From Guillardia theta CCMP2712 (Eukaryota > Protista > Cryptophyta): a DNA stretch of 64,000 nt. The notes under the pieces were generated by a model. The model made no database searches. It was not told the origin of the DNA and saw only the letters and a list, made by a program, of their open reading frames with translations. Of this stretch, positions 41,005-44,736 are shown piece by piece. A program made the translations under genes and the position numbers. Positions within the stretch are counted from its first letter, which is position 1. Each line of letters starts with the position of its first letter. The DNA lies in NCBI RefSeq assembly GCF_000315625.1, contig NW_005434656.1, positions 696,645 to 760,644 of the forward strand. Direction: 5' to 3'.

Positions 41005-42457
41005 CCTCGACAAGGGGTCACCTTCCTATGCTGGGGTCTACTAGCGCCAGTTGCCGGCAAAGGTCGATAGGCGGGGCTTCAACAAATCATGTTGACCTGT
41101 GCAGGGCAAAAGTTTGAGAATGGCGCGAGCGACGGCATGGTATCGGCTTCACGTGTTAGATCGCAATCCCGGACTCCAACATCATCTCGCAAGTCTTCAA
41201 CGACACTACTCCACCCTTGAGGACTCTAAGCCTCTCCTCTTCTACAAGTTCGTTCCTACTCTTGCTAAATCACCTCAATTCCAAAGTATCCCAACAGAAT
41301 GAGAAAATATGTGATCTTGTCTGTCTTTTACAACGCCGCCGGGGCTCTCGGCACCTCAAAATTCTCCATGTTTTGTGCACCTCCTTGCAACGCTCTTTAG
41401 TAAACTCTGTTCACTATGTCTTACCTCATATTCCTGCCCTCTTCTGCTCTTCTGTACTTCTACTCTTTCTTGTCCTCTCTTCGATTTACCTCACTTCTTC
41501 TCTCCTCTTCCCTCTCCTCTCCTGTCTTCCCCTCCTCTCCCCTCCTCTCCCCTCCTCTCCTCCTTCCTCCTTTCCTCTCCCCTCCCCTCCTCCTCCCCTC
41601 CTCCTTCCCTCCTCCTTCCCTCCTCCTCCCCTCCTCCTCCCCTCCTCCTCCTCTTGTCTTCCCCTCTTCTCTCCTCCTCTCCTCTTCCCTCCTGCACGCT
41701 ACTCATGTTGTGCATTGACATCGTCCACTATGCGGCATCAGTTCATCGGGTAAATGATACCCACCCTGACCAAAGACCCCTACCCCATGTCAGCCAGTGC
41801 CCTACCCTTCACCGACTTCACAAAGTGCAGGTGAATGGAGCACCGGTACTTTTACCTGCCAAAGTACCAGTAAAAGAAGGGAAATCAATCTAATTTGATA
41901 ACCCCCACCCTCCCGTGATTAACCCCTACCCCCCACATTGTATTCATCACCCCATCGCTCGCAGACCCCTCTCTGCCAGCTCCGTTCAAAAAATCCTTAG
42001 ATAGTACACCCTACCCCCCATAAATCACCCTGAATATATGAAACGCAGGGGTGGAGCATCCCCGAGCAAAACCCGAGGGTCATCCATCTCACGCGGTTAC
42101 AACCCTGCTCTTTTGTCGGGGAGCAGCGGGAGAGAGGGAGAGAGGGAGAGAGGGAGAGAGGGAGAGAGAGAGAGAGGGAGGGAGGGAGGGAGCAAGGCGA
42201 CGAGGCAAGAAAGGGCAGAGGGAGGAAGGAGCCGAGAACATATGCAGATGAGACGTGTGGGATCGAGCACAAAGGATACCGAATCCGTGAAACGACAAGA
42301 TAGAAGGAGGAAGTGTATGTGCTTGGTGAACATGTAGGCCGGTTGCAAACAAGTTGAGAAGACTTGCAGTGGTAGGACAGGGCAGATAAAGCCGTGCGGC
42401 ACGGTATTCATTTTGATGCGATTGATCAGCAGATATGACATTTCCAGCGGAAGAAAG

Positions 42458-44320
42458 ATGACAATGAGGCGACTGCTGTTGGCAAAACTTGGTTTCATCA
42501 GAGGCAGTGCTCACGTGCTATGTTGTCTCCTCCTCTTTACCGGCCGCGTCACAGCAGGGCAGAGAGAAAACTTCACGGTTGTTGCATCCCTGACAAGACC
42601 TGAGGAGATATACCTCCCAGGACGAGTCGGAGCAAGGTGCGAGCAGGTCAGTCACTCCTTCCCTCTTGCCTGTCGGCAGCCCTGACGGCCACTTGCTGCA
42701 GGCGCTGGTCAACTTTAGCAGGCCTCACAAGGAGCGATGGAACGCATCACTCGAGGACTTCTTGTCGCTGCTCCCGGCAAAATTTTCATCTCTCCGCGTA
42801 GGCGAAGTTTTCCCTGTGCTCAACGAGACCGCGGTCCTTGACCGATGGCTCAGAAAGCTCCACCCAGGAGCGAAACATGCTCGATACCATCCCCTCGACC
42901 CGCAGGTCAGACCGGAGGCTGGAGGGTACGGCATTCTCAGAGCCATCTCCAACGAGAGGATGGAGTTTCTTTTCCGCATCCAAGCAGAGTTCCTCCTGCA
43001 GCCATCTCCCCCGCTCTTTGCAATGCCCAGCAGGTTGGATGGAACGCTTGTCATGGATAGCTCAGGACAGAAAATTTTCTTCTTCGATTTGTCTCTTCCG
43101 ACTGTTCGCGCCTACAACCTACTGCTGGAGTGCGGGGAGCCCTTTGCTAAGCTGGGGAACAAGCTCGACGCTGCTCCGAGCTCCCCAGATGCCCGAAGAC
43201 TGACAGTAAATCGTCTGATCCTCAGGAGAGATGCAATCGACAAGGAGGGAGACAGAGAGGACGGGAACTGCGAGCTCTTGCAGGACAGCAACGATCACGT
43301 TGCTGCTCGTTTGAACGGGGAGGAACTACCGGATGATGTGGAACCCCCATTGATGAGGATGGACGACAGAGATCAAGCTGAGATCGCTGCAAGCAACGAC
43401 GGAACTCCCGGAGGGGTTGAAGGAGGAGCTGCCATGGCCATGGCAGATTTTCAGGTGTCGCCATTCGCATGAGGTGTTCCGTTGACCTTTGCCTACAGTT
43501 TTTCCCAGGAGTGAACTCAGAGGAGAGCCCAGCCGCGGACATGACTCTGGACACTGCAGTGCAGGTATGAACGGCCGGGCTGTGCGATTCTGCCGCCTGC
43601 CAGTGATCTGCTGGACAGGAGCTGAACTTCACGGAAATGAGGATCCAGTATCGATCGGAGCTATACGATCAGCAGGTGGCGATCGAATGGACCGCGTCGT
43701 TGCCTGTGGCAGACGCACAAGACAAACTTGCCGTCTCTCTGTACCCCTTCCTCGGTGCTGGCTACGACCAGGACTACATGCAAGCCTTCGAGAGGGCAGG
43801 AAGCAGCAGGCGGCCGCTCTTGGCCGTCGTGCTGTGGGGGGCACTGGATGATTCGTCGTGCTGAGGGACTGGAAGGGTCCTGCGGAGTCTGGTGGGTGTT
43901 CGGGCCCCTGCGATCCCATCCTGACGTGCGTGCAGCTTTCTGAGACACCTGTCATACTCCTGCTGAGGGAGAGGTTTGTCAATACCTGGGTCCTCAAGAA
44001 AGATCTAGAGGATGACCTGAGCACGAACTCGGAGGGTTCCACCATGCTACCCCGCAGGATGCTAGCAAGGCGCCTCCTCGCCGCATCGGACCAGCTTGCC
44101 CAGGTTTTCCTCAGGGGGGCAGGGCGAGTCTCACCTGCTGTTCCAGGTTGTCGTTCTCACGGCTGATGAATACGGAGATTTCAGTTCGGAGCGGGCGGCG
44201 CTGACCTTGTACACAGAGACAGGCGCTAACGCCGCTATGGACAGAACCGTGAGCGGTTTCATGCAGTTTTTGCAGGACTGCCTGGACCAGCATCACCAAC
44301 ATAACCAGGCGGACATTTGA
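42458..44320 (+). CDS. SELENON: Selenoprotein N homolog; Sec-UGA at 43862-43864
   Basis: LWGALDDSSC-TGA-GTGRVLRSL|LSETPVILLLRERFVNTWVL aligns with SelN LWGALDDQSCUGSGRTLRE...PILTLLNESFISTW. Hydrophobic N-terminus; SECIS in the 3' UTR. Confidence 0.9.
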
Positions 44321-44326
44321 TCTGCG

Positions 44327-44391
44327 GCAAGCTTCACACATGACGAGGCATCTTGAAACCGGGAGGAGAGGTGTCTCCGATACAAGCTTGC
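44327..44391 (+). promoter_or_regulatory. SECIS element (type II-like)
   Basis: Helix I GCAAGCTT/AAGCTTGC; core ATGA (44340-44343) with GA (44379-44380); helix II GAGGCATCTT/GAGGTGTCTC; apical AAA (44356-44358) plus a CC/GG ministem. Confidence 0.9.
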
Positions 44392-44736
44392 AAATAAACA
44401 TGAAAACAAGGCTTTCAGTGCTGCTTTTGAGTGCAAGAAAAAAAAAAGAGTTCATTCGTACTTTACACGTCATCGCACAAATCTATGCCAAACAGAAGAT
44501 ACTTCTACTTCACATCAACAATAGACTTGAGAGCGACGAAGCAGCCTGCCATGTTTGCGCTGTCGAAGGCTGATACATTTTTGTGCAATACAGATGTACA
44601 TGAGTTTGGTGCGCCAACAAAAAGGACATGCAGCAAAGAAATTCAAAGAAGAAGAGGTGCCGTGGTCGGAGCTGTACAATCCTGTGAACGTCCGAACATA
44701 CTGATAAATTCACCGATGAAGGGCCAGGTCGTTTCC

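Follow-up and report, generated by a model that had tools for sequence, protein, structure and literature searches.

In a 64,000-nucleotide stretch of the genome of the cryptophyte Guillardia theta CCMP2712 (contig NW_005434656.1, positions 696,645 to 760,644 of the forward strand; hereafter the window, numbered from its first letter), we analysed a plus-strand gene that we assign, with a probability of roughly 0.9, to the selenoprotein N family (SELENON, or SelN). The gene is single-copy in the genome, has a host-like composition (G+C content about 53%) and contains an in-frame UGA that would be read as selenocysteine (Sec) through a Sec insertion sequence (SECIS) in the 3′ untranslated region (UTR). 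Enumeration of splice sites gave a model of six exons (Table 1), with 540 codons counted from the ATG at 42458, a single internal TGA and a second TGA as terminator. Transcript contigs from three studies (X1, X2 and X6) carry the same five joints, with no differing letters and no insertions or deletions. The runs behind these contigs are labelled only 'RNA?'; being joined without introns, the contigs can derive only from spliced RNA. The transcript piece 43616-43890 includes the internal TGA, which is kept, not spliced out, in all three studies. The contigs begin at 42213 or later and end just past an AATAAA, at positions that give a 3′ UTR of 91 nt.

A preliminary description of this locus, made from the sequence, had delimited the gene as 42458-44391. 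The SECIS lies where it put it, but the extent needs correction at both ends. An in-frame ATG is present at 42416, 14 codons upstream of 42458 and with an in-frame stop farther upstream, and the residues encoded between 42416 and 42458 look by eye like the N-terminal end of P0001, the orthologue from Hanusia phi. This ATG may be the true start, which would make the protein 554 residues long and place Sec at residue 432. At the other end the transcript extends to 44405-44411.

Table 1. Features of the SelN gene and its SECIS element, in window positions.
Feature	Positions	Strand	Details
5′ UTR	42213-42457	+	reach of transcript contigs; contig X1 begins at 42213
Exon 1	42458-42646	+	63 codons from ATG 42458; basic N-terminus and hydrophobic segment
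Exon 2	42702-43454	+	251 codons; conserved SelN N-terminal domain, then acidic low-complexity linker
Exon 3	43499-43564	+	22 codons; part of the linker
Exon 4	43619-43891	+	thioredoxin-like domain begins; carries the redox motif S-C-U-G
In-frame TGA, predicted to be read as Sec	43862-43864	+	codon 418 (from 42458) or 432 (from 42416)
Exon 5	43936-44103	+	56 codons; conserved post-Sec sequence (LSETPVILLLRERFVNTWVLKKDLE...)
Exon 6, coding part	44147-44320	+	57 codons and terminal TGA 44318-44320; C-terminal motif FMQFL
Introns	42647-42701, 43455-43498, 43565-43618, 43892-43935, 44104-44146	+	GT..AG; 55, 44, 54, 44 and 43 nt
SECIS with apical mini-stem	44327-44391	+	minimum-free-energy fold and descriptor
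SECIS helix I	44327-44334 / 44384-44391	+	8 bp, GCAAGCUU/AAGCUUGC
SECIS core	AUGA 44340-44343, GA 44379-44380	+	internal loop
SECIS helix II	44345-44354 / 44368-44377	+	10 bp, no mismatch, three G-U pairs
SECIS apex	AAA 44356-44358, then mini-stem CC/GG 44359-44366	+	mini-stem of 2 bp, loop GGGA
AATAAA and transcript 3′ ends	44393-44398; 44405-44411	+	sequence and transcript contigs

The open reading frame (ORF) at 43637-43864 is closed by the internal TGA immediately after ...VVLWGALDDSSC (...WGALDDSSC), which bears out the SelN context that had been read there. The block WGALDDSSC-TGA-GTG spans 43835-43873, placing the codon in the context DDSSC-U-GTGR, and past the TGA the same frame reads GTGRVLRSL up to the GT donor at 43892; the nearest intron lies 27 nt downstream of the Sec codon. 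The identity of the protein was sought on both sides of this codon. Exon 2 has its best protein match in the cryptophyte Hanusia phi (81% identical). A profile (A1) combining exon 2 with its three closest relatives was searched against 1.84 billion representative proteins and returned 118 proteins, animal SelN models among them. A separate profile search to name the nearest relatives gave environmental proteins only. The family includes a protein named 'selenoprotein N [Mactra antiquata]' by NCBI (P0080), a jellyfish protein (P0071) and a hypothetical protein from a Poribacteria metagenome-assembled genome (P0042, MDE0014519.1). Exons 2, 4 and 5 match residues 180-344 (E 4e-13, 27% identity over 169 columns), 388-446 (E 1e-5) and 443-467 (E 6e-7) of P0080 respectively, that is in collinear order and on both sides of the TGA. 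The 122 residues encoded past the UGA give full-length alignments with relatives, at 46% identity to an orthologue on a marine metagenome contig (L021) and 22-31% to animal and bacterial members. In a local BLAST search the spliced C-terminal part matched P0026, P0071, P0075 and P0080, and the FMQFL of exon 6 has its aligned counterpart at the C-terminal ends of animal and bacterial members. The earlier claim of SelN-like sequence continuing in frame past the TGA therefore stands, for animals, the cryptophyte-like relative and bacteria alike. One further protein, P0110, which looks like a mammalian SelN fragment, was in the local BLAST database with the other matches and was left out of later comparisons and of the tree described below. 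Pfam returned no family on any exon, on the cryptophyte-like P0009, on the bacterial P0029 or on the C-terminal part of L021; we know of no Pfam model for SelN. A PDB sequence search with exon 4 and P0029 gave no match, and the ESM Atlas search with exon 4 returned only bacterial clusters (0.85-0.87) and was uninformative.

The way in which family members end carries its own signal. Seventy-eight of 119 representatives stop exactly at the Cys before Sec (...x(S/T)C), as DDQSC in 41 cases, DDESC in 12, NDQSC in 10, DDASC in 5 and in other forms in the rest, which is the mark of a selenoprotein family cut at its UGA by gene callers. No Cys-form member was found among the 119. The expectation that standard annotation would truncate or split such a gene is thus met with across the family, since L021 is also called as two genes by the gene caller and animal models skip the codon. 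In the public animal models P0071, P0075 and P0080 the Sec codon is skipped or garbled: P0071 passes from ...LLWG directly to SGRTLRE, and P0075 has junk between DDQS and GSGRTLRE. Judging from these models, SelN is mis-modelled in animals as well.

Where nucleotide sequence around the codon was available, the TGA was found to be kept. The marine metagenome contigs L018 and L021 read ...WGALDDASC-TGA-GTGRVLRS(I/L)LSEPEV... in a single frame with no introns, and on L021 that frame continues to a stop 143 codons past the TGA. The gene adjoining SelN on L021 is closest to a protein of the cryptophyte Rhodomonas, so that the L021-type clade is probably also cryptophyte. In a further relative (L020, 2184-2400) a single base, the G of TGA-G, stands between the Sec codon and an intron. 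Poribacteria and Planctomycetota loci have a TGA after ...LDDESC in 22/22 cases, followed by 94-300 further in-frame codons (most about 95-120) with conserved motifs; these loci were retrieved by the pattern LDDESC and sample one bacterial subgroup. Bacterial SelN-like genes (among L029-L076) carry the label hypothetical protein, and their annotated products break off at ...LDDESC. Their reading frames suggest a bacterial selenoprotein family that has escaped annotation, and a search of the available literature found no paper describing bacterial SelN-like proteins.

The element at 44327-44391 is, by its predicted fold and its position, a canonical eukaryotic SECIS. It begins 7 nt past the stop (6 nt between), with the AUGA/GA core, 10-bp helix II and apical AAA exactly where the preliminary description had claimed them, and the whole of it lies within the 3′ UTR of the mature mRNA. 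The AUGA core is 388 nt from the Sec UGA and 19 nt from the terminal UGA. Both the minimum-free-energy and the centroid folds give the exact SECIS shape. A SECIS descriptor matched once in the window, on both strands searched, at this element, and chance matches were expected at 0.025 per window (5 in 200 first-order Markov simulations). Downstream of the L021 orthologue a relaxed descriptor found a candidate SECIS, its core being GUGA, about 80 nt past the stop, and Rfam gave no match there. A genome-wide search with the Rfam model SECIS_1 (RF00031) had a best score of 27.2 bits and no locus at the gathering score; the three top matches (L026, L027 and L028) share the layout of AUGA, about 12 nt, AAA, mini-stem and GA. 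These three fold as good mini-stem SECIS elements although sub-threshold; at the thresholds of Rfam, SECIS elements of this lineage would be overlooked.

Most of the Sec machinery, to which the preliminary description had tied its reading, is present in the genome. Searches covered tRNA-Sec, SepSecS, SelD, eEFSec and PSTK. The tRNA-Sec gene was found by RF01852 (72.9 bits) and called as tRNA-SeC with anticodon tca by ARAGORN, while SepSecS (PF05889) and SelD (TIGR00476) scored 423 and 290 bits. One locus (L010) carries both GTP_EFTU and euk_SelB_III, the latter scoring 29.4 bits (cut-off 27), and on this domain pair is likely eEFSec. Two features of these genes may be recorded separately. The tRNA-Sec gene (L001 1500-1586, G000:C65, minus strand) lies 5 nt from a tRNA-Ala(AGC) at 1592-1664 on the same strand, and the two could be a tandem or co-transcribed pair. 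The SelD match of about 310 residues (L009, G000:C2:791896-792825, minus strand) lies inside a 962-residue stop-free frame, which suggests a fusion protein with extra domains.

The protein is laid out as a hydrophobic leader, a conserved N-domain, an acidic linker and a domain with the redox motif. The basic and hydrophobic stretch of exon 1, judged by eye, is likely a signal peptide or signal anchor. The fold was approached through an AlphaFold model of a full-length bacterial member, P0029 (predicted local distance difference test 87.8, predicted template modelling (TM) score 0.82), which has a beta-rich N-domain and an alpha/beta C-domain, with the motif loop between the strand 301-306 and the helix 317-326. 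Structure comparison places DsbH-type, UAS, thioredoxin and DsbD-gamma folds closest to the modelled C-domain (with weak E-values of 3.5e-4 to 0.06, a probability of about 1.0 and a TM by target of 0.45-0.56), and the window's protein aligns with P0029 residue for residue, in order, over the thioredoxin-like domain. Thioredoxins carry CxxC at the junction of strand and helix. A search for EF-hands gave no match on any exon, on P0009 or on P0029, and weak sub-threshold matches within residues 50-95 of the animal models P0080, P0071 and P0026. As P0009 and P0029 also lack it, we take the EF-hand to be an animal addition and not a defining part of the family. The gene lacks the Ca2+-sensing module of animal SelN, and a role in endoplasmic reticulum (ER) Ca2+ and SERCA control cannot be assumed for it; the link to ER Ca2+ mentioned in the preliminary description should not be extended to this gene.

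Put together, the expression of the gene would proceed as follows. The mature mRNA retains the in-frame UGA in the S-C-U-G motif of the family, and the SECIS, 388 nt past it, would recruit SBP2, eEFSec and Sec-tRNA(Sec), so that this UGA would be decoded as Sec and the product would have about 540-554 residues. Translation would end at the second UGA, which precedes the SECIS stem by 6 nt; by analogy with the minimal spacing known in mammals, the hairpin is probably too near for this codon to be recoded. The hydrophobic leader would direct the product to a secretory or ER route, and Sec would sit at the strand-helix junction of the thioredoxin-like domain. From the modelled fold of the family, such a domain with Sec is most likely a thiol/selenol oxidoreductase.

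The relationship of the gene to other SelN sequences was examined with an unrooted maximum-likelihood tree of 91 N-terminal parts and 309 columns. The window's gene falls in a clade supported at 100/100 with five environmental cryptophyte-like representatives. On one side of a 99/97 branch lie this cryptophyte-type clade, a clade of 27 rows that contains every named animal, and P0021; on the other lie the remaining 57 rows, which include all named Planctomycetota and Poribacteria. The gene thus groups with animal SelN and not with bacterial-type sequences. The preliminary description had proposed a pre-animal origin or a transfer of the family. The unrooted tree, as far as these sequences go, is consistent with a eukaryotic SelN that was shared before animals arose, and an old transfer would fit it too; the idea is not a new one (PMC7539508). 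We suggest, tentatively, a wider account in which SelN is an ancient and nearly always Sec-keeping family spanning Planctomycetota and Poribacteria, cryptophytes and animals. The cryptophyte gene would then descend vertically from an early eukaryotic SelN, and the EF-hand and the SERCA link would be later animal additions. The ancestral job would be Ca2+-independent redox work in a secretory or periplasmic compartment, and the core a beta-rich domain joined to a DsbH/UAS-like thioredoxin domain with S-C-U-G.

Alternatively, the gene could be a real selenoprotein that cryptophytes acquired by horizontal transfer, the donor being an animal, another eukaryote or an unsampled bacterium, in which case it would have no bearing on a pre-animal eukaryotic SelN. 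Among eukaryotes other than animals, every named member seen here is a cryptophyte or cryptophyte-like (Hanusia phi, and L021 with its Rhodomonas-like neighbour gene), a patchy distribution consistent with either transfer or massive loss; the tree is unrooted, and the short post-Sec motifs GTG and FVNTW look more bacterial than animal. However, long branches split the cryptophyte-type clade from the animal clade, and it is nested neither in animals nor in any sampled bacterial group (99/97). In addition, five spliceosomal introns interrupt the gene, its SECIS is of the eukaryotic type and its composition is host-like; with an unnested clade these features mean that any transfer would be old. 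We regard such an acquisition as rather unlikely.

That the gene encodes a selenoprotein at all has also to be weighed. The UGA at 43862 could be an ordinary stop, leaving a truncated protein of 417 residues and downstream exons and a hairpin that are relics or untranslated. UGA does serve as the normal terminator of this gene too, and several results weigh against the assignment to a recoded SelN. Sec insertion at this UGA is predicted from sequence, and the raw RNA run X19 has 30 reads on the locus, too few to show the UGA region. The mRNA 50-80 nt after the UGA has no stable hairpin of the kind of the Sec codon redefinition element (SRE), with z-scores of -0.5 to +0.6 against shuffles and only a small 6-bp hairpin. 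The z-score of the SECIS fold is modest (-1.96), and the descriptor, which follows the usual SECIS rules, was composed after the element had been seen. With Rfam SECIS_1, whose gathering score is 35, the element scores 17 bits and helix I is mis-paired; as the best match in a genome with many selenoproteins reaches only 27 bits, this sub-threshold score reflects the limits of the model in this lineage. A genome-wide search for euk_SelB_III (PF21208) found no match, and the search for PSTK gave one KTI12-family locus that is ambiguous and possibly KTI12 itself. Finally, the thioredoxin-like fold around the redox motif is predicted at the level of the family, through P0029.

Against termination at this codon, the 122 post-UGA codons stay open across two more introns and are conserved at the protein level with the cryptophyte-like relative (46%), animals and bacteria. 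Truncation would sever the thioredoxin-like domain at its active site. Moreover, the TGA is retained in every relative examined (L018, L020, L021 and the bacterial loci, 22/22), and the genome carries Sec machinery. We therefore consider an ordinary stop very improbable. We can practically dismiss an error of sequencing or assembly at the TGA, as well as a nonsense allele peculiar to the strain in place of a Cys codon, either of which would make the gene a Cys homologue or pseudogene: although TGA is one base change from TGC and TGT, it is found in the genome and, with no differing letters, in transcript contigs of three independent studies, it recurs in orthologues of other organisms, no Cys form was seen among the 119 representatives, and algal SELENON is almost exclusively of the Sec form according to the 2020 algal catalogue (PMC7539508).

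The assignment to a Sec-containing SelN has to be set against what was already described. SelN seemed animal-specific to Lobanov et al. in 2007 (PMC2375036), and a 2026 review of SelN mentions orthologues only for vertebrates and some invertebrates (PMC12839072). In Jiang et al. (2020), SELENON is one of 42 algal selenoprotein families, almost exclusively Sec-containing and among the least widespread, and G. theta is credited with 14 selenoproteins in 12 families (PMC7539508). That catalogue may already contain this very gene. Since SELENON has been listed in algae since 2020 (PMC7539508), the novelty is modest: the gene is a new or barely documented cryptophyte orthologue of SelN, and not a new kind of biology.

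Its interest lies in what it can say about the family. In humans SelN is a disease gene (SEPN1-related myopathies), and the reaction that its product carries out is still poorly defined. An expressed cryptophyte orthologue without an EF-hand, together with Sec-keeping bacterial homologues, helps to delimit the conserved core of the family. Cryptophyte and bacterial SelN would also be simpler systems in which to search for the substrate and to ask why Cys almost never replaces Sec. The practical gain is the correction of a gene that ordinary gene callers cut at its active site.

Two features of the surroundings are recorded here. A convergent neighbour transcript on the minus strand (44431-44700; X1 and X6 contigs) has its 3′ end at about 44431-44434, some 20-25 nt away from that of the SelN mRNA, which leaves an intergenic gap of almost nil. 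Upstream of the gene and partly within its 5′ UTR, positions 41200-42300 form a low-complexity tract, CT-rich/GA-rich and strongly strand-biased, that yields long spurious ORFs on both strands (Ser/Pro/Leu-rich and Gly/Glu/Arg-rich).

Compared with animal SELENON/SEPN1, the window's gene has the same order of domains with an FRI(Q/H)AEF block, the same ...LWGALDDxSC and the same S-C-U-G with a UGA in the Sec position. It also shares G-x-G-R-x-L-R ... F(V/I)xxW-L after Sec, a C-terminal (Y/F)xxFL, a SECIS in the 3′ UTR, a hydrophobic N-terminal segment and the same side of the 99/97 split. Unlike the animal genes, it has no EF-hand, a long acidic linker between the domains, a 3′ UTR of only 91 nt and a UGA that is also the terminator, and identity is about 25-30%. 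An SRE-like hairpin is likewise missing; a stem-loop of this kind just downstream of the Sec UGA is described for human SEPN1 in work cited in PMC4561486. With the bacterial SelN-like proteins of Poribacteria and Planctomycetota it shares the two-domain core, the TGA after the pre-Sec Cys and the motifs GTG and FVN(T/A)W. The bacterial proteins differ in being shorter (about 280 residues before Sec) and intronless, they lie on the opposite side of the 99/97 split, and they would need a bacterial SECIS inside the coding region. Within the same genome the other top SECIS elements have the same architecture, but that of the window is unusually near the stop, at 6 nt. Lastly, DsbH, UAS and DsbD-gamma domains have a fold like that of the modelled C-domain of P0029, with the motif between a strand and the next helix. 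SelN is set apart from them by a motif of S-C-U-G and not C-x-x-C, and by having no match to Pfam or PDB by sequence.

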